This document shows, piece by piece, positions 5,360-61,416 of a stretch of DNA of 64,000 nucleotides. A program made the translations under genes and the position numbers. Location of the stretch: sequence record MN563784.1; one strand, given 5' to 3'. Under the pieces are notes generated by a model. The model saw only the letters and a program-made list of their open reading frames with translations, was not told the origin of the DNA and made no database searches. Every line of letters starts with the position of its first letter. The stretch's first letter is position 1.

Positions 5360-6292
5360 GTGATGAGAATTATTGATTATGTACGTGAACTCGCACCAGT
5401 TACTGAACGTCGTGAACTATTAAATCAAATCCGTTCATTACGTGAAGAATATGATGCAACTCTCGCACCAATTATTGACGATGTAGGTGAAGTATTTGGT
5501 AATATGCAACTTAAATCAGATTTAGGTATGCGACTATCTACTGAACTACGGCGAGCGATTAGTTTTAATACCGAACCAATTACACTAGTACTGGATACTC
5601 TTTCAAATATTCGTGGTAGCTTTGATATGATCGAAAGCGAAATCCGACGTTTATTTGCTATTCAGTTTACTAACTCTAATCTAACCTTTGACCGTGCAAA
5701 TATGCTACGTTTTGTTGATGGTCTTAGTTTCTATATTCGTTATGGCCGTAAACTACTGCTAAATCTAATTGCACAAGAAGCAATGAAATTAGGTAAGGCT
5801 ACAGAATTAAAATCATCTCGTGCTGAGAAAGAATGGCTATACACCAATATGGCACAATTCATTACTCTGTATCCAGCAATGAGTCTTAAGACTAATGAAC
5901 TGAAACAACGCTTAAGCCGTGCATCTAGTGCTGAAGTCAATGAAGGTACTTATGATGTAGCTGTGAGTGCTCTCTCTATAGCTCAACGTGATCCACTTAA
6001 CATGGATGGCTTCTCACCTCGTCAGAACCCGTTCGTGCTATTTGGCAAGTTCTTAGCTGAGTATCAGGTTGAACGTTTTAAAGAAGCTGAGCAAGAATTC
6101 CTTGCACTTCAACTACGTTTACAAGAAATGCGGGAAATGCAAAGTAATGGTAAAGTGGATGCACGCCTACAGAAGCTTATTAAAGAGTATGAAATTCGTA
6201 TCTCTGATTATAACTATCGCCTAGGTATGATCCAAGATCGCGCATCTGAGTTCTTTGCTAACCATCGTGATCTACTATCTCTTGGTCACTAA
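5360..6292 (+). CDS. Internal head protein (gp90 position)
   Basis: 310 aa, helical/coiled-coil C-terminus, RBS AAGGA; synteny. Confidence 0.72.
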   Translation: MMRIIDYVRELAPVTERRELLNQIRSLREEYDATLAPIIDDVGEVFGNMQLKSDLGMRLSTELRRAISFNTEPITLVLDTLSNIRGSFDMIESEIRRLFAIQFTNSNLTFDRANMLRFVDGLSFYIRYGRKLLLNLIAQEAMKLGKATELKSSRAEKEWLYTNMAQFITLYPAMSLKTNELKQRLSRASSAEVNEGTYDVAVSALSIAQRDPLNMDGFSPRQNPFVLFGKFLAEYQVERFKEAEQEFLALQLRLQEMREMQSNGKVDARLQKLIKEYEIRISDYNYRLGMIQDRASEFFANHRDLLSLGH

Positions 6293-6837
6293 TGGAGGGC
6301 ATTGATATGCCAGCAACTAATGCTGTACGCCCATTTGGTCGTAATTACTCAGGTGGTCAACAACAGGCCATTTCACGGTTCACTGCTCGTCCCGGTGATC
6401 CTCAAGTTGAAGAACTATATCTTATCTTTACCAACTTTCCTGCACAAACTGCATATTGGGAATTCCATAAGAAAGTTCTAGCTTGTGCTATTCGTCTTTT
6501 TAGCGGAAACTATAATTGGTTTATTCTACAGGACAATAATAGTAATATTGATAGTTATAATTATCAATTCCTATTAGATACTGTTCGATACATTGCTACG
6601 GGTCATCGACGTATTTCAATTACCCAATGGCCAATGTTACTAGCTACTGAACCAGATGCTGGTGCACAACTCATTGAACCGCGCGCTGAAATTGCTACTC
6701 TCTTTAATGAGTTAAAATTAGATCTAGATACTGTTTCAATGATCCAGAATTGGGTTAAACACAAAAACGGTATGAATGATCTAATGTATACCCTACATCT
6801 ACTATTTGGATCTGTAGAAGTAATAGATAAGGACTGA
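6292..6837 (+). CDS. Head structural protein (gp91 position)
   Basis: 181 aa, TAATG stop-start coupling; synteny. Confidence 0.65.
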   Translation: MEGIDMPATNAVRPFGRNYSGGQQQAISRFTARPGDPQVEELYLIFTNFPAQTAYWEFHKKVLACAIRLFSGNYNWFILQDNNSNIDSYNYQFLLDTVRYIATGHRRISITQWPMLLATEPDAGAQLIEPRAEIATLFNELKLDLDTVSMIQNWVKHKNGMNDLMYTLHLLFGSVEVIDKD

Positions 6838-6846
6838 GGACTATCT

Positions 6847-8169
6847 ATGACTAATAATTCACTTAGTCATTCGGTCTTACTTGAATCAATCGACGGGGAC
6901 AGCCCCGTCGATATGATCGCTACATGCGATGGATATCTAAAAGAATTATTGCCATCAATTGAAGATATTCAAAGTAGATTAGAATGCACTGAAAAAGACA
7001 TTTTAGTTAAAACCTATACCGATGGCTTATTTCAAAAATATGCAGATAACCAAGATGTTGTTAGTGAACACATTCTAAAAACTGAGAATGTGTCATTAGA
7101 AGACCTATCTAAGACAGCACGAAATACCTGGGATGAAATGAAAAAATCCCAAGCAAAGCATCGAGATGAGTTAAAAGAGTATGCACGTGTTATTACACAA
7201 GGTAATCAACGTACTCTTGAACGAATAAACATGCTTTTAGAAAGAGCTGAAAATATTAAGCATGAGCCATTTAAGCAAGAATTAAAATTTAAAAATACTA
7301 AACGATTTAGTATTGATGGTAAATTCGAACCGACTACAGTTGATCCGATACTCATGCAAGTTAACAACTTGATAGCTTTCTATGATAAATCCCTACTCTT
7401 GTATATCCAATCTGTAGCGGATATCCTTAGGAAATTATCATTTGATGAAAAATGGACTGATAGAGCTGCACAAGACTTTAGTAAGTTTAATGTTAAGAAC
7501 TGGATGAAGGGTGCAGTACCTATTAAGAAAGATGATAGATTTAGAGTAAGTTCTACAGTTTATCGTAGTATGCCAGTTCAAGGTAATAAGACTTTATTTG
7601 GCGCAGGGCCAACTGAAACACAGACTGAAGAGATCAGGGATTGGGATTTTTTAGTAAATACTGTCCGTGATTTTGCCTTTAAGTTTTATACTATTCCTAC
7701 TATGAAGGATGCACCTGAAGGTAACAATACCTTTAAGGTTAATGATACGAGTTCAATTGGAAGACGGTTAGTATTATTAAGCGAAATGGCTAAACGTATA
7801 GATGCTAGAAAAGATTATGCAACTAAACTAGATTTTGAATTTGGTAGGTTAATGCAGTTAGCCGAGACTAATCGTCAACAAGCTGGTAGGATTCGGGCAC
7901 AACAATCTAATATGCGAAATCGTCAAGCAAAAGTTCAAGATCCGGATGCACCTGATGGCATCCCTGCTATCTCAAATATCATTAATTCAATTACATTAAT
8001 GATCAATAATGTAAGTCGCGTTGTAACAGATTTTAGTAATGCTCTTGCTGGTTTAGTCAGAGTAATGGGTCGACTAGTATTCGTGACCGAGTTAGAATTA
8101 AAAGCTTACCAGCGTCCAATTCAAAGACCTACGCAAGAACAAGTAAATAATCCCTCCCAGGTAAGGTAA
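6847..8169 (+). CDS. Head protein with cleavable propeptide (gp92 position)
   Basis: 440 aa, VSLED motif; synteny. Confidence 0.68.
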   Translation: MTNNSLSHSVLLESIDGDSPVDMIATCDGYLKELLPSIEDIQSRLECTEKDILVKTYTDGLFQKYADNQDVVSEHILKTENVSLEDLSKTARNTWDEMKKSQAKHRDELKEYARVITQGNQRTLERINMLLERAENIKHEPFKQELKFKNTKRFSIDGKFEPTTVDPILMQVNNLIAFYDKSLLLYIQSVADILRKLSFDEKWTDRAAQDFSKFNVKNWMKGAVPIKKDDRFRVSSTVYRSMPVQGNKTLFGAGPTETQTEEIRDWDFLVNTVRDFAFKFYTIPTMKDAPEGNNTFKVNDTSSIGRRLVLLSEMAKRIDARKDYATKLDFEFGRLMQLAETNRQQAGRIRAQQSNMRNRQAKVQDPDAPDGIPAISNIINSITLMINNVSRVVTDFSNALAGLVRVMGRLVFVTELELKAYQRPIQRPTQEQVNNPSQVR

Positions 8170-12800: not shown

Positions 12801-12819
12801 TGATAAGTGACGACATATC

Positions 12820-12849
12820 GACGGGGCTCGGAAGAGTCCCGTCTTATGT
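12820..12849 (+). terminator. Intrinsic terminator
   Basis: GACGGGGCTC-GGAA-GAGTCCCGTC then TTATGT. Confidence 0.8.
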
Positions 12850-12861
12850 TAGGAGTTAGCA

Positions 12862-19652: not shown

Positions 19653-21633
<1,981 letters not shown>

Positions 21634-29436: not shown

Positions 29437-29560
29437 TCAGTTAAACATTTAAGAATAAAAGAATTAGCCCTACTGCTGCAACAGTAGGGCTATATGCCGT
29501 TGAGTAAAAAATACTCAACATTTTCGCCCAAATGGGCTTGGATTAACAAGAGGAACCATC

Positions 29561-33463: not shown

Positions 33464-35707
33464 ATGAGCGTACATGCCCTAAGAGAACTGTTTAAACACA
33501 AAGGCGAAAAGAATTACGAAGTCTTCTCAATGGAAGATTTCATTGGCCGCCTAGAAAGTGAAATTGGTCTAAATGACAGCGTTGTTAGTCAAGGTCGTTC
33601 CCTTATTAGCAGCATTTCACATGAAAACTTCGGTACCGTGCAAGCTACCGACATTCAAGATGCCGCTGCAATTTATAACAAAATGCAAATGCTCGTTAAC
33701 GACTATGGTTTCGAACGAGTAAGTTCCAGTGATCCTCAAGTACGTGCTCGTGAAGAACGTGTCCGTGAGAACCAAATCACTGCTGCTACCATGGCTGCTA
33801 TCGCCTGTGCTGATGAAACTAAATATATCCGTGCACTACGTGGTATTACCAAAGCTAAAGCTTCTAATGAAGATCATGTTAAGGTTGTACAGCATCAGTT
33901 CAATGGCCCTGCTGGTGGCATTCAAGTATTCGAAAATGGTGTTGGCCTAGAGAACTATAACGAGAAGTCACAGCGTGATTTCCGTGTTGTAACTATTGGT
34001 TATAACCTAGCTGCTAGCCGTCAGGATGAATTCGCTGAGCGTATCTATCCGACCACCGTTATCAACCCGATTGAAGGTGGTGTTGTTCAGGTTCTTCCTT
34101 ACATCGCTGTAATGAAAGACGTTTACCACGAAGTATCCGGCGTTAAGATGGATAACGAAGAAGTGAACATGGTAGAAGCCTATCGTGATCCTTCCATCCT
34201 CGACGACGAAAGCATTGCACTAATTCCTGCCCTAGATCCGGCTGGTTCCAATGCTGACTTCTTCGTAGACCCGGCTCTTGTTCCTCCGTACACCATCAAG
34301 AACGAGCAGAACCTAACTATCACTACTGCTCCGCTAAAAGCGAACGTACGTCTTGATCTAATGGGTAACTCCAATGCTAACCTACTCATTCAGCGTGGCA
34401 TGCTTGAAGTTTCTGACACCATTGATCCGGCTGGTCGTCTAAAGAACCTATTCGTTCTACTCGGCGGTAAAGTTGTTAAGTTCAAGGTTGACCGTCTACC
34501 TCGCGCTGTGTTCCAGCCCGATCTAGTTGGTGATACCCGGAACGCAGTTATCCGTTTCGATAGCGATGACCTTGTTGTTAGTGGCGATACCACTTTCATC
34601 GACGGTTCAGCTGATGGCGTTATTAACGACCTTAAGACTGCTAAACTAAGCCTACGTCTAAGCGTTGGTTTTGGTGGTACTATCAGCCTATCCAAAGGCG
34701 ATTCTAAGTTTGGTGCTACCGACACTTACGTCGATAAAGTTCTAAACGAAGATGGCCAGGTAATGGATAATGCTGACCCGGCTGTTAAAGCTATTCTAGA
34801 TCAGCTAACTGACCTAGCTGTTATCGGTTTCGAACTAGATACTCGCTTCACCAACACTAACCGTCGTCAGCGTGGTCACCTACTACAGACCCGTGCACTA
34901 CAGTTCCGTCATCCGATCCCGATGCACGCTCCTGTAACTCTACCGATGGACACCATGACCGATGAAGGTCCGGGTGAGGTTGTTAAAGCTCTAACTGTTA
35001 ACACCAACATCCGTAACAGCAACAACGCTGTTAAGCGCATGCTTAACTACCTTGCTCAACTACGTGAAGTTGTACACAATGGTTACAACCGTCCGAAGTT
35101 TGGTATCATCGAAGGTGCACTATCCGCTGTAATGCGTCCGACCTATCGTTACAAAGAACTAGATCTTGAGAAAGTCATCGACACCATCAAGTCTAAAGAT
35201 CGTTGGGACGACGTTTGCGCTGCGATCCTAAACTGTGTTAAAGCTGAGCTATTCCCGGCTCACCGTGATTCCAACATTGAAGCTGCCTTCCGTGTTATCT
35301 CCGGTAACCAGGATGAAACTCCGATGTATCTCTTCTGCTCCGACAAAGAGATTGCTAACTATCTAATGACTAAAGGTGACGACCGTACTCTAGGTGCTTA
35401 TCTCAAGTACGATATCGTTTCCACCAACAACCAGCTATTTGATGGTAAGCTAGTTGTAATTCCGACCCGCGCAGTACAACAAGAAAACGACATCCTCTCC
35501 TGGGGCCAGTTCTTCTACGTATCTACTGTTATCGCTGACCTACCGATCACTCGTGGTGGTCACCAGGTTACTCGCGAAATCGCGGCCATTCCGTTCAACC
35601 TACACGTCAACAACATTCCGTTCGCGCTAGAGTTCAAGATCACTGGCTTCCAGAAAGTCATGGGCGAAACTCAGTTCAACGGTAAGCTTGCTGATCTTAA
35701 GCCGTGA
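33464..35707 (+). CDS. gp120: Major capsid protein precursor
   Basis: 747 aa; propeptide with FSMED/ISHEN/VGLEN cleavage-type motifs; strongly biased codon usage; position. Confidence 0.93.
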   Translation: MSVHALRELFKHKGEKNYEVFSMEDFIGRLESEIGLNDSVVSQGRSLISSISHENFGTVQATDIQDAAAIYNKMQMLVNDYGFERVSSSDPQVRAREERVRENQITAATMAAIACADETKYIRALRGITKAKASNEDHVKVVQHQFNGPAGGIQVFENGVGLENYNEKSQRDFRVVTIGYNLAASRQDEFAERIYPTTVINPIEGGVVQVLPYIAVMKDVYHEVSGVKMDNEEVNMVEAYRDPSILDDESIALIPALDPAGSNADFFVDPALVPPYTIKNEQNLTITTAPLKANVRLDLMGNSNANLLIQRGMLEVSDTIDPAGRLKNLFVLLGGKVVKFKVDRLPRAVFQPDLVGDTRNAVIRFDSDDLVVSGDTTFIDGSADGVINDLKTAKLSLRLSVGFGGTISLSKGDSKFGATDTYVDKVLNEDGQVMDNADPAVKAILDQLTDLAVIGFELDTRFTNTNRRQRGHLLQTRALQFRHPIPMHAPVTLPMDTMTDEGPGEVVKALTVNTNIRNSNNAVKRMLNYLAQLREVVHNGYNRPKFGIIEGALSAVMRPTYRYKELDLEKVIDTIKSKDRWDDVCAAILNCVKAELFPAHRDSNIEAAFRVISGNQDETPMYLFCSDKEIANYLMTKGDDRTLGAYLKYDIVSTNNQLFDGKLVVIPTRAVQQENDILSWGQFFYVSTVIADLPITRGGHQVTREIAAIPFNLHVNNIPFALEFKITGFQKVMGETQFNGKLADLKP

Positions 35708-35788
35708 GCTGGAAAGGGTTACCGTTATCTAGAAAATGGGACTATCCGTTATTTGGAAGACGGTAATGCCCGGAAGTTAGAAGAGTAA
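35708..35788 (+). CDS. Putative stop-codon-readthrough C-terminal extension of the major capsid protein (AGKGYRYLENGTIRYLEDGNARKLEE)
   Basis: In frame with the UGA at 35705-35707; motif shared with the C-terminus of 60883-61416; ~23-bp hairpin 35716-35771; terminator only after TAA 35786-35788. Confidence 0.65.
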   Translation, partial: AGKGYRYLENGTIRYLEDGNARKLEE

Positions 35789-35797
35789 CAGACATAG

Positions 35798-35826
35798 GCC
35801 CTCCCTTCGGGGAGGGCTTTATGTTG
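35798..35826 (+). terminator. Intrinsic terminator of the capsid operon
   Basis: GCCCTCCC-TTCG-GGGAGGGC then TTTATGTTG. Confidence 0.88.
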
Positions 35827-35843
35827 TATTACATTAAAAAAAG

Positions 35844-35860
35844 TTTAAGATCTATATTAC
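35844..35860 (+). promoter_or_regulatory. phiKZ-type early promoter for the operon containing the nvRNAP subunit
   Basis: TTTAAGATC-TATATTAC. Confidence 0.78.
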
Positions 35861-35903
35861 AGTAATGATCATGATCTTCTAATTTAAAAATAGGTTAATC
35901 CAA

Positions 35904-41950: not shown

Positions 41951-41970
41951 TAATTAAGTAATGGCATAAA

Positions 41971-41992
41971 CCCCTCTCCGCATGGAGAGGGG
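41971..41992. terminator. Bidirectional terminator between convergent genes
   Basis: CCCCTCTCC-GCAT-GGAGAGGGG flanked by CATAA and TATG. Confidence 0.8.
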
Positions 41993-42014
41993 CTATGTCT
42001 TTATTTTTTTTTAT

Positions 42015-52332: not shown

Positions 52333-52349
52333 ACATCTGACCCGGCATA

Positions 52350-52380
52350 AGAGACACAGCCAAAAGCTGTGTCTCTTTTT
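52350..52380 (+). terminator. Intrinsic terminator
   Basis: AGAGACACAGC-CAAAA-GCTGTGTCTCT then TTTT. Confidence 0.8.
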
Positions 52381-52406
52381 GCTGTTTCAGTTAAAAGGTA
52401 TTTCTT

Positions 52407-60882: not shown

Positions 60883-61416
60883 ATGCAGGATATCTTTCCG
60901 TATGACATGGCATCGAGGAATGCGCTAGTAAAACTTGCGCGGGATGATTTAAAAATAAACTTCAAACCAGAAACAGTTACATTTGAAGATATGTTTTTTA
61001 GTCCAACCACGATTGAGCCTGGACGTACATTTATTGAAATGATCGACATTACTACTGACATTAAGTACATGTTAACTTACCGTCGGTTAGATTTTGCTGA
61101 TCCACGAGCTATTGGTGAAGGATCTATCCTTAAGATAGTTGGTACTTTAACACCTAAAGCGATTGCTGAAGAAATTAACCGTTCACGAGGTTGGAAGCTT
61201 GGACCAGATGATATTTCATTCGATACAACACCAATCAATGCAACTACGGATATTGTTCCATACACGATAGTAGCTATGTCGAGTAGTTATGCTTACTATG
61301 GTGAATGTAATATACTAATTCAACGTATTGATGATACGTCAGATACTATCCGACTATTAGAGAATGGTGCAGCACGTTATCTAGAAAATGGTCAAATCCG
61401 TTATCTAGAAAGTTAA
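60883..61416 (+). CDS. Virion protein with YRRLDF module and C-terminal triple R(L/Y)LE(NG) repeat (gp143 position)
   Basis: Ends TIRLLENGAARYLENGQIRYLES. Confidence 0.7.
   Translation: MQDIFPYDMASRNALVKLARDDLKINFKPETVTFEDMFFSPTTIEPGRTFIEMIDITTDIKYMLTYRRLDFADPRAIGEGSILKIVGTLTPKAIAEEINRSRGWKLGPDDISFDTTPINATTDIVPYTIVAMSSSYAYYGECNILIQRIDDTSDTIRLLENGAARYLENGQIRYLES

Follow-up and report, generated by a model that had tools for sequence, protein, structure and literature searches.

The hairpin that follows the major capsid protein gene's UGA stop codon, in a 64,000-nucleotide stretch of sequence record MN563784.1 (hereafter the window), is best explained as one part of a conserved programmed read-through cassette located at the 3′ end of this gene, wherein the helix most likely tunes the frequency of read-through. 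We assign this interpretation a probability of roughly 45%. According to this model, the majority of ribosomes would stop at the UGA codon at positions 35705-35707, and a small fraction would decode it, by default with the near-cognate Trp-tRNA, to add 26 residues to the protein. The added residues would form a triple RxxE[D/N]G tag with a design identical to that of the C-terminal tail of the virion protein gp143, and of the ~1,600 capsid subunits a minority would carry this tag, placed at the center of a capsomer. The hairpin would largely be an RNA ‘shadow’ of the tag, because the sequence that codes for each repeat is a near-palindrome. Selected extra pairs would then strengthen the capsid copy, namely a clamp of GGG with CCC and a helix of CCGN with NCGG, which start 8 nucleotides past the stop. 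With UGA in the A site, the ribosome would meet the intact helix where the mRNA enters, and the most likely function of the helix would be to tune read-through, probably upward. The inserted amino acid, the effect of the helix on the read-through rate, and the binding partner of the tag are components of this model that we infer.

A selected in-frame extension beyond the capsid gene stop

The gene that spans positions 33464-35707 on the plus strand carries 747 codons and ends with TGA. Its DNA sequence is a 100% match to PHIKZ120 of phage phiKZ and to many Phikzvirus genomes, and its product, a major capsid (head) protein of the phiKZ gp120 type, matches the Pfam family PhiKZ_MCP with an E value of 5e-228. 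In phiKZ, which serves as the model for nucleus-forming jumbo phages, the capsid structure is resolved through residue 747, the last one annotated, and a catalogue of the virion proteome is available. The UGA codon, which we propose to be leaky, is preceded by a proline codon (CCG) and followed by G. In frame with the capsid gene, an extension of 26 codons plus TAA occupies positions 35708-35788 of the plus strand, and encodes a putative tag comprising xGKG followed by three 8-residue repeats that conform to RxxE[D/N]Gxx.

TAA is the most common ORF terminus in the window (42 of 56 ORFs), and TGA ends only eight (14%). Among the related jumbo phages compared, an extension is present in 27 lineages (the Pseudomonas clade, Goslar, FLC9 and L082), all of which end the capsid gene with TGA, and is lacking in 14, all of which end it with TAA. 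The association of TGA with an extension and of TAA with its absence holds for 41 of 42 lineages. Lineages lacking the extension have had the whole segment deleted, and no UTR hairpin is left behind. For example, a close relative of Noxifer (L092) has lost the extension and uses TAA as its capsid stop, and the capsid gene of SPN3US ends with TAA-TAA and likewise has no extension.

The frame past UGA remains open for 18 to 30 or more codons across the 27 related lineages, and in an alignment of 23 lineages it is likewise open, with indels that are multiples of three. Residues R8, E11, G13 and G22 of the extension are invariant, R17 and E20 are present in 13 of 14 lineages, and the conserved motif residues are specified by two to five different synonymous codons per position. 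Frame, motif residues and stop codon (UGA) alike are retained at a divergence where synonymous sites have been scrambled, and these alignments show the extension to be under selection at the protein level. The triplets that follow UGA among the lineages are GCU, ACU, GAU/GAC, AAU, AGG, AAG, AGU and CUG. Codon usage in the extension (log2 ratio of -0.51 per codon) differs from that of the body of the capsid gene (+0.70), which fits with rare translation of this segment.

Because UGA co-occurs with a selected in-frame extension, and UAA is found where the extension is absent, the UGA at 35705-35707 is very likely a programmed leaky stop. We infer from the same comparisons that read-through occurs, and together with the shared tail peptides described below they strongly support programmed read-through that yields a tagged capsid subunit. 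Frameshifting need not be invoked as the source of the extension, as evident by the fact that the conserved frame is frame 0. A search for a suppressor tRNA gene in the 64-kb window yielded none.

The tag is shared with the tail of a virion protein

Four extension peptides yielded no match to Pfam, and a search of PHROGs produced only a weak match (E = 0.08) to the C-terminus of a family of 180-residue virion proteins. This weak match led to gp143, a virion protein of 177 amino acids whose gene is located at positions 60883-61416 on the plus strand and whose DUF7941 fold is indicated by a weak Pfam match (E = 1.3e-3). The last ~23 residues of this protein (encoded by 61345-61413) carry the same three RxxE[D/N]G repeats with no stop to read through, and BLASTP aligns the extension with residues 157-176 of 177 (E = 2e-7), which shows the tag to be homologous to the gp143 tail at the level of protein sequence. 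The three-repeat design is common to 22 aligned gp143 homologues (the window copy plus 21 further loci), although it is imperfect in the most divergent of these. The tag is absent from gp119 and gp121. An AF2 model of the gp143-type protein (pLDDT 86), constructed with an input alignment of IMG/VR loci, matches a single chain in 9xqd, a structure of the phiKZ outer baseplate (E = 3e-7).

A parallel arrangement is present in the E. coli phage Goslar, whose extension is unrelated in sequence. This peptide matches the tail of gp23 (E = 4e-6; residues 158-176 of 180), which is the Goslar counterpart of gp143. In the Burkholderia phage FLC9, the capsid gene has TGA plus 18 codons with a DGF motif at the end, and no partner protein with a DGF tail was found within 50 kb downstream of the 3′ end of its capsid gene. 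DUF7941 virion proteins of the Chimalliviridae include gp143, gp126 and gp127 of phiKZ and gp22 and gp23 of Goslar. It is the small one, encoded beside the endolysin, that shares its C-terminal tail with the capsid extension, both in phiKZ-like phages and, with another sequence, in Goslar. The capsid protein differs from these proteins by having no DUF7941 domain, and only the tail peptide is held in common. Such tails in Goslar are predicted to dock head-to-tail on the following protomer's N-terminal domain, and the fibers are placed at the baseplate in that work, wherein the capsid gene is not mentioned (10.64898/2026.04.21.720040, PMC13742148).

A stable hairpin whose pairing is mostly encoded by the tag

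The preliminary description of this region proposed an extended hairpin 8 nucleotides beyond the capsid UGA, and this structure is reproduced by RNAfold. Positions 35716-35771 of the plus strand form a single hairpin of 22 to 23 base pairs with two mismatches and one 2-nucleotide bulge. The predicted fold has 22 pairs in segments of 11, 6 and 5 that are separated by single mismatches, with the bulge on the 3′ side, and it agrees with the pairing scheme drawn earlier save for a U·G versus U-A register at the bulge and a loop of six rather than four nucleotides. G35716 is the ninth base past TGA (35705-35707), which creates an 8-nucleotide spacer. The minimum free energy of -24.7 kcal/mol compares with a mean of -11.1 ± 2.5 for 200 dinucleotide shuffles (z = -5.39), none of which is as stable, and thus the hairpin is beyond chance for random sequence. 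Only 17 of 9,135 overlapping 56-nucleotide windows on the plus strand (0.19%) are equally stable, representing approximately seven loci that include the adjacent terminator, and the best window within the capsid gene reaches -19.0. The hairpin is retained when a 141-nucleotide context is folded, alongside a separate, strong terminator hairpin.

This intrinsic terminator (35796-35819, plus strand) has a GC-rich stem of 10 base pairs and a U-rich tail, and begins 8 nucleotides past the second stop. All relatives have a comparable hairpin, with CUUUAUG after it. The hairpin at 35716-35771 was itself considered as a terminator and rejected: it is not called by a terminator scan, and the sequence that comes next is GGAAGUUAGAAG. 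Its 5′ basal arm (35716-35726) consists of GGG plus UUACCGUU and pairs with 35759-35771, which is composed of GACGGUAA, the 2-nucleotide bulge and CCC. As judged by RNAalifold and covariation, these two arms are the sole part of the structure that is conserved in relatives. The inner 11 to 12 base pairs and loop (35728-35757), which include a UCUAGA-type palindrome and AAUGG/CCGUU pairing, are lineage-specific and, as evident from comparison with gp143, are intrinsic to the coding of the repeats.

It had been argued that direct peptide repeats cannot generate this inverted pairing, and that the hairpin therefore provides independent evidence of selection at the RNA level. The first argument does not hold. 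The coding unit of the repeat, C-CGU-UAU-CUA-GAA-GAC-GG, is nearly its own reverse complement, and consequently two tandem units pair together. Moreover, the same inner hairpin is formed by the native coding sequence for the gp143 tail (approximately 61380-61410), which has no read-through stop. Strict permutation of the phiKZ codons preserves -21.9 of -28.3 kcal/mol (~77%). We conclude that the hairpin results mostly from the way in which the tag peptide is encoded. A more general lesson for such analyses is that a hairpin formed by tandem repeats does not constitute independent evidence of RNA-level selection unless codon-preserving controls and paralogous copies are included.

These observations give weight to an alternative in which read-through is real but is set only by UGA and its immediate context (a Pro, Ala or Gly codon before, A or G after), such that the hairpin arises inevitably when tandem RxLE[D/N]G repeats are encoded and plays no part in recoding. 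For phage Qbeta, UGA read-through of approximately 1 in 15 is given without a structural element (PMC8067240). We consider this explanation to be a serious possibility, albeit one that falls short of probable, and its strength depends in part on the null model that is applied. With strict codon permutation, the native phiKZ fold is better than its controls (p = 0.02), p is below 0.05 in six of 14 lineages with a Fisher combination of 6e-5, and the native fold is no better than permuted versions in four of 14. When codons are redrawn according to genome usage, the phiKZ value is p = 0.0013. In contrast, when capsid-gene usage is employed, phiKZ yields p = 0.11 and no lineage is significant. This last null is the most favorable to the by-product explanation, but it is too generous because the extension does not use capsid-gene codons. 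The codon-shuffle comparison suggested in the preliminary description therefore gives a divided result, favoring the native fold under two nulls and not under the third.

The paralogous tails serve as a second control that argues against a pure by-product. When homologous 22-codon cores are compared, capsid extensions average -19.3 kcal/mol and gp143 tails -15.3 kcal/mol, with the extension folding more stably than the tail for 16 of the 19 lineages (Wilcoxon p = 0.001). The mean permutation z is likewise -1.10 for the extensions versus -0.12 for the tails. These data show that the capsid copy has excess stability relative to its gp143 paralogue. Structure past the stop is also present with other extension types, as evident by z values of -1.9 for Goslar, -3.9 for FLC9 and -2.6 for L082, whereas the Goslar gp23 tail control gives 0.0. 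Thus, although the repeats create most of the pairing, a residual RNA-level signal remains.

Conservation of the stem gives a similarly mixed result. The RNAalifold consensus contains only nine pairs (GGG/CCC and NCC-GNN/NNC-GGN; -6.7 kcal/mol), the inner 12 base pairs are missing from it, and its covariation term of +0.31 provides no net support, which is the outcome expected if the hairpin is a by-product. The apical stem-loop is absent altogether in 201phi2-1-type lineages. Contrary to that expectation, third positions in the stem base are conserved across amino acid changes, with codon 4 ending in G in 14 of 14 lineages and codon 7 ending in C in 13 of 14. Codon 24 of the extension is xCC in 13 of 14. 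The GGG at +9 to +11 keeps its distance from the stop in 13 of 14 lineages aligned first (the exception is Noxifer), and when the alignment is enlarged to 23 sequences a few more of them do not retain GGG. Basal pairing occurs in 80% of cases in relatives compared to 31-55% for slid controls, and the corresponding values for the full 23-pair structure are 66.7% and 38-49%.

Counts of basal pairs and their covariation also exceed those of shuffled alignments, with the observed values being reached by 0 to 2 of 500 for the basal helices and by 0 to 3 of 500 for the structure overall. Cells changed on both sides of a pair number 15, compared to 6.6 ± 1.8 in shuffles with 0 of 500 reaching 15, a difference that must be read in light of the clade structure of the covariation, which reduces it to few independent events, and of the fact that related sequences can beat shuffles without any structure. 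Two-sided changes affect three to four pairs, and the basal pairs are conserved mostly via invariant bases. Overall, the covariation is modest.

Other readings, known recoding systems and significance

The hairpin might instead be a 3′-UTR-type element, since the segment goes untranslated whenever a ribosome terminates at UGA (~95+% of them), and would serve in stability or processing of the very abundant capsid mRNA or in terminator insulation rather than decoding. Its location, flanked by the main stop on one side and by the strong and conserved terminator on the other, is consistent with such a role, as is the fact that few local structures in the window are as stable, where the one such locus that was examined (35771-35840) proved to be the adjacent terminator. 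However, structure at the 3′ end is already supplied by the terminator hairpin, neither the fixed 8-nucleotide distance nor the coupling of the segment to UGA instead of UAA is explained, and lineages that delete the extension keep no UTR hairpin. We therefore view this function as improbable.

Even less probable is the absence of any read-through, in which case the extension would be a relic, a tract acquired from gp143 by gene conversion, or a micro-ORF with its own initiation, and the hairpin would be incidental. Open frames of at least 26 codons past a stop are not unusual, occurring for 14 of the 56 ORFs in the window. One ORF with a TGA end (6292-6837) has 443 in-frame codons beyond it, and was set aside as the next gene sharing the same frame. 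A read-through form of the phiKZ capsid protein is unmentioned in the structural, proteomic and genetic papers searched, and this literature contained no mass spectrometry or Ribo-seq result for read-through or for a gp120 extension in phiKZ-like phages. Furthermore, the Ig-like ORF of L082 has an in-frame ATG two codons past TGA and could be a separate gene. Opposing this explanation, the aligned lineages contain no conserved in-frame ATG, GTG or TTG in the extension, which rules out independent initiation, and the retention of frame, motif residues and UGA amid scrambled synonymous sites, the near-perfect association of stop codon with extension, and the recurrence of the arrangement in Goslar with a different tag are not expected of a relic. 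Finally, selenocysteine insertion via SelB, which the preliminary description offered as an alternative, is extremely improbable even though Pseudomonas hosts carry the Sec machinery and the hairpin, like a bacterial SECIS, lies soon after UGA within the coding continuation and has G at the first loop position, since an Rfam search of 35600-35900 (E up to 10) gave solely sub-threshold matches driven by the terminator, the apical stem-loop needed by SelB is unconserved, and the loop resides ~34-39 nucleotides from UGA when E. coli-type SECIS spacing is far shorter.

Returning to the read-through cassette, a close analog is found in an RNA phage. Qbeta produces its C-terminally extended minor coat protein A1 by read-through and incorporates it into the capsid (PMC8067240). 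As with A1 of this single-stranded RNA coliphage, a conserved UGA ends the coat gene, and in the present case the in-frame downstream ORF is under purifying selection at the protein level. The systems differ in that the present one belongs to a 280-kb double-stranded DNA jumbo phage whose capsid protein has the HK97 fold, the extension comprises no more than 26 to 30 residues that duplicate a tail found on a second virion protein, and a stable hairpin follows the stop. Frameshift-extended capsids, such as those of T7/T3 gene 10B, Lactobacillus phage A2 and Listeria phages A118, A500 and PSA, similarly extend a fixed minority of subunits by recoding where the capsid gene ends. The T3 and A2 extensions are Ig-like domains (PMC5009743), and a Big_2 Ig-like domain is found at the same position past the capsid gene in two of our lineages (L082 and L091). 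In contrast to these examples, the proposed mechanism would be read-through of an in-frame stop in frame 0, with no -1 or +1 shift and no slippery site.

Structures approximately 8 nucleotides past the stop are a common feature of eukaryotic-virus read-through signals, and some type II signals also extend coat proteins (PMC3542737). The arrangement described here resembles type II signals (alphaviruses, tobraviruses and coltiviruses) and the MuLV pseudoknot in having UGA, an 8-nucleotide spacer and an extended imperfect stem-loop. It differs from type II signals in that the CGG or CUA triplet after UGA is not found, the ribosome is bacterial and the release factor is RF2, and the base of the stem alone is conserved with most of the stem forced by the encoded repeat. 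A stimulatory role for the hairpin is plausible, and the hairpin is likewise a plausible candidate for setting the ratio of tagged to untagged capsid protein, as was originally suggested. In bacteria, stimulation of near-cognate read-through by a hairpin downstream of the stop has, to our knowledge, no precedent.

A broader and more speculative proposal, which we judge unlikely as a whole, is that nucleus-forming jumbo phages of the Chimalliviridae use conserved UGA read-through of the capsid gene to show the docking tail of a DUF7941 fiber or lysis-regulator protein (gp143 in phiKZ, gp23 in Goslar) at a few capsomer centers, thereby tying that protein or its partner to the capsid, and that the stem-loop is the first case in bacteria of a stimulator like the extended 3′ stem-loops of eukaryotic RNA viruses. 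If the read-through form of the capsid protein is real, the virions of phiKZ, PhiPA3, 201phi2-1, Goslar and their relatives would contain a component that is missing from their annotation. It would also provide an attachment point for the abundant and unlocated DUF7941 proteins, or link capsid production to the gp143 lysis regulator. Such a tag would constitute a natural site for C-terminal display on the capsid of a jumbo phage, and the cassette would offer a tractable bacterial system for assessing how a downstream helix affects the competition between RF2 and a near-cognate tRNA.

The capsid gene and its in-frame continuation

The window belongs to a phiKZ-type Pseudomonas jumbo phage. Its gene for the major head protein gp120 (33464..35707) encodes 747 residues (Pfam PhiKZ_MCP, E=5e-228) and ends with a TGA at 35705-35707, within a region (35400-35900) that is 100% identical to phiKZ and to many other Phikzvirus genomes. 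Beyond this stop, the same frame remains open for 26 codons (35708-35785) until a TAA at 35786-35788. An open frame alone is not unusual, as evident by the fact that 14 of the 56 ORFs in the window are followed by at least 26 open codons past their stop. Every Pseudomonas relative in which the segment occurs has a TGA followed by 26 to 30 sense codons, namely PhiPA3, PS119XW/PA1C, Phabio, 201phi2-1, Viktualia, Psa21, RVTF4, Noxifer and some 15 uncultivated IMG/VR genomes. The encoded peptide starts with xGKG (or xxPG) and continues with three 8-residue repeats of the form RxxE[D/N]Gxx. Codon alignment reveals that R8, E11, G13 and G22 are invariant and that R17 and E20 are kept in 13 of 14 sequences, while each conserved position uses 2 to 5 different synonymous codons (Arg at R8 and R17 together is encoded by CGU, CGC, CGA, CGG, AGG and AGA). 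Indels in these codon alignments are multiples of three. Invariant residues with varied synonymous codons and indels of three are the hallmark of selection acting on a translated peptide, and no conserved in-frame start codon is present within the extension in the codon alignment.

No extension is present in ten IMG/VR relatives or in the phages Ea35-70, RTH11, RSL2 and SPN3US, and the capsid stop is TAA in all 14; in an uncultivated genome close to Noxifer (L092), the segment has simply been lost. By lineage, the extension occurs with TGA in 27 cases and with TAA in one (the uncultivated genome L091), and its absence is accompanied by TAA in 14 cases and by TGA in none. Among the ORFs of the window, TAA terminates 42 of 56 and TGA 8 of 56. 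Small 'hypothetical proteins' are annotated over the extension region in Viktualia (L009:984-1082, in a frame that differs from that of the extension), HPP-Temi and vB_PA32_GUMS, and annotation pipelines register an open frame after the capsid stop without tying it to the capsid gene. Elsewhere in the window, ORF 6292-6837 ends with TGA and the next gene (6847-8169) begins 9 nt on in the same frame, which is probably a coincidence but formally makes this pair another candidate for a read-through fusion.

Expressed as the log2 ratio of capsid to genome codon usage, the mean per codon is -0.51 both for the extension and for the tail of the virion protein gp143, and +0.70 where the capsid gene ends. 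Such non-capsid usage is how a rarely translated continuation would be expected to look. The G+C content of the extension (0.45) resembles that of the capsid gene, and that of the window is 0.38. Its GGA, GGG, UUG, UUA and CGG codons each make up at most 3% of their codon family in the capsid gene, and its GCC 12%; of these, GGG, UUG and GCC occupy stem positions of the hairpin described below, and the first C of CGG closes the CCC arm.

The phiKZ capsid structure (PMC11297242) includes a model of the C-terminal arm (728-747) through its last residue; the arm builds a six-helix bundle in the middle of each hexamer, and in pentons it extends to the outer decoration protein gp244. Any extension would therefore come out at the centres of capsomers and would most likely project to the outside.

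A tag in common with small virion proteins

In a six-frame motif scan of the 64 kb, only two places carry the double repeat: the stretch that follows the capsid UGA and the C-terminus of ORF 60883..61416. The latter encodes gp143, an annotated virion structural protein that adjoins the endolysin gp144 and carries the tag natively (tail, 61345-61413). BLASTP matches the extension to gp143 residues 157-176 of 177 (E=2e-7), a 17-nt stretch (CGTTATCTAGAAAATGG) is identical between the two coding regions, and tblastn locates exactly two such places, the capsid extension and the gp143 tail, per phiKZ-like genome. The window's gp143 is 100% identical to that of PA7/KTN4-type phages and 98.9% identical to that of NC_004629, the window being distinct from that reference genome. 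The three-repeat design is common to 22 aligned gp143 homologues (from 21 further loci plus the window), with R157, E160, R165, R173 and E176 invariant, G162, E168 and G170 nearly so, and imperfect repeats in the most divergent lineages. A Goslar virion study (10.64898/2026.04.21.720040, also PMC13742148) reports gp143 as a DUF7941 protein, and another paper reports it as a gp142 holin regulator (PMC12894885); its Pfam match to DUF7941 is weak (E=1.3e-3). An AF2 model (pLDDT 86; tail ~70, with a beta-bridge every 8 residues) yields one significant PDB match, to a chain of the phiKZ outer-baseplate structure 9xqd (E=3e-7).

The comparison that decides the matter is with the distant E. coli chimallivirus Goslar. 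Its capsid gene also ends with TGA, followed by 28 in-frame codons (L012:1086-1172) whose sequence is unrelated to the phiKZ-type extension. This extension matches residues 158-176 of 180 in the C-terminal tail of Goslar gp23 (L033:2863-3405; E=4e-6), with the heptapeptide DNVADGF in common. Gp23 is a small DUF7941 protein beside the Goslar endolysin, reported at ~2,140 copies per virion. The relation between capsid extension and the tail of a small DUF7941 protein thus holds in two deeply separated clades and, with different tags in each, is a co-variation of the whole module.

Other tag types were also encountered. Burkholderia phage FLC9 carries a capsid TGA followed by 18 codons with a DGF motif, for which no partner protein was found in the 50 kb downstream of the capsid gene. 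A Big_2 Ig-like domain occupies the extension position in two uncultivated genomes, L082 (1125-1577, E=1.8e-9) and L091 (1140-1427, E=4.7e-7). In L082 the capsid stop is TGA, yet an in-frame ATG lies two codons further. In L091, the sole exception to the association of UGA with an extension, the stop is TAA, there is no obvious start codon, and the domain is followed by an RxTEDG-type tag. Recoding that adds Ig-like domains to capsid proteins is known in phages (PMC5009743). In Salmonella phage SPN3US (L038:32728-35446), the capsid gene ends with TAA-TAA and has no extension; gp184 and the DUF7941-like gp183, two virion proteins adjacent to each other, both bear an xxDGFR-type C-terminal motif resembling the Goslar and FLC9 tags. 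These resemblances suggest that modular C-terminal tags form a family.

The hairpin and the codons that compose it

The preliminary description placed a hairpin 8 nt after the capsid TGA, and folding confirms it. Nucleotides 35716-35771 form a single imperfect hairpin of 22 pairs (-24.7 kcal/mol), compared with -11.1 +/- 2.5 for dinucleotide shuffles (z -5.4; 0 of 200 as stable). It is retained in a larger context beside a separate, adjacent terminator hairpin (35796-35819). Only 0.19% of 9,135 same-length windows on the same strand are equally stable, clustering at about seven loci that include this terminator, and the best window within the capsid gene reaches only -19.0. Six other structures on the + strand are at least as stable (41952-42007, 29464-29519, 52333-52388, 6882-6937, 19692-19747 and 12804-12859) and are presumed to be intrinsic terminators between genes. 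CTTTATG at the 3' edge of the terminator (35818-35826) and TCTATATTAC about 30 nt past it (35851-35860) are kept in almost all relatives though their flanks diverged, and possibly constitute a phage promoter for the gp121-gp123 genes.

The further claim that the hairpin is independent of the peptide repeats does not hold. The coding unit C-CGU-UAU-CUA-GAA-GAC-GG is close to a palindrome (CCGU..UCUAGA..ACGG), and therefore two tandem units pair with each other. The Arg codon of the first repeat pairs with the Asp-Gly codons of the second, the Leu-Glu codons of the two repeats pair among themselves, and the Asn-Gly codons are matched by the Arg codon that comes next. The same inner hairpin arises in the gp143 tail coding region, where nothing is read through. 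When synonymous codons are permuted among positions, -21.9 +/- 2.8 of the native -28.3 kcal/mol (84-nt segment) is kept. RNAalifold on 14 lineages retains 9 pairs only (GGG/CCC plus NCC-GNN/NNC-GGN; -6.7 kcal/mol, covariation term +0.31), and the inner 12 bp are not conserved, though they are the source of much of the folding energy in phiKZ. The main rival explanation treats the hairpin as a passive by-product, with stop context alone setting the read-through rate, as in Qbeta (PMC8067240).

Against codon permutation, the native sequence is more stable in phiKZ (p=0.020); of 14 lineages, six reach p<0.05 and four show no excess. The Fisher combination of these values is 6e-5, uncorrected for relatedness. 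Recoding with genome codon usage, the usage that the extension actually follows, yields -14.7 +/- 3.8 (p=0.0013), and recoding with capsid-gene usage gives p=0.11-0.12. The homologous 22-codon core serves as a natural control, folding at -19.3 kcal/mol in capsid extensions versus -15.3 in gp143 tails. In 16 of 19 lineages the extension has the greater stability (Wilcoxon p=0.001), and the mean permutation z is -1.10 versus -0.12 (p=0.004). The gp143 tails fit the null and the capsid extensions do not.

Third codon positions in the basal helices (35716-35726 with 35759-35771) are kept across amino-acid replacements, while other third positions vary freely. The third base of codon 4 (AAG, GAG, CCG or GCG) is always G, and codon 7 has the form xxC in 13 of 14 sequences; codon 21 is either GAC or AGC, and codon 24 is GCC, UCC, CCC or ACC. 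In an alignment of 23 sequences, pairing over the 9 basal pairs reaches 80%, versus 31-55% with the partner slid. Changes on both sides occur in 15 cells versus 6.6 +/- 1.8 in shuffles (0 of 500 reach 15), representing few independent events because they follow three clades. Structure past the stop is likewise seen in the unrelated extensions (Goslar z -1.9; FLC9 z -3.9, with a 15-bp stem; L082 z -2.6), and the Goslar gp23 tail control gives z 0.0. We conclude that a moderate RNA-level signal exists beyond the demands of the peptide, and selection on the basal helix itself seems to us somewhat better than an even bet.

Possible control of read-through

Slow RF2 action is favored when the P-site codon is for Pro, Gly or Ala and when A or G follows the stop. 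Most ribosomes would terminate at the UGA, while a few per cent would decode it as Trp and continue into the tag. When the UGA occupies the A site, the base of the helix, at +9, would be located at the mRNA entrance. Known recoding stimulators have this geometry, in that their structures typically start around 8 nt 3' of the stop (PMC3542737). We assign a probability of about 40-45% to the reading that the basal helix tunes read-through. A role for the hairpin in mRNA stability or processing is less likely, and Sec insertion at the UGA is unlikely because the hairpin has no family match and its apical part is not conserved.

Relatives of the DUF7941 tag-bearing protein have been proposed to polymerise via docking of the tail onto the next protomer. 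By analogy, we infer a function for the tag, the simplest idea being that tagged capsomers would present the same docking peptide to the same partner.

Extension of coat proteins by read-through or frameshift is of a known kind (Qbeta A1; T7/T3 10B; A2, A118 and PSA; plant-virus CP-RT). Within an incomplete coverage of the literature, we found no published description of jumbo-phage capsid read-through, of a tail-mimicking extension or of this stem-loop. If true, stop read-through in the capsid gene of a dsDNA jumbo phage would be new, as would an extension that mimics the tail of another virion protein and a bacterial case of a stem-loop 8 nt downstream of a stop codon.
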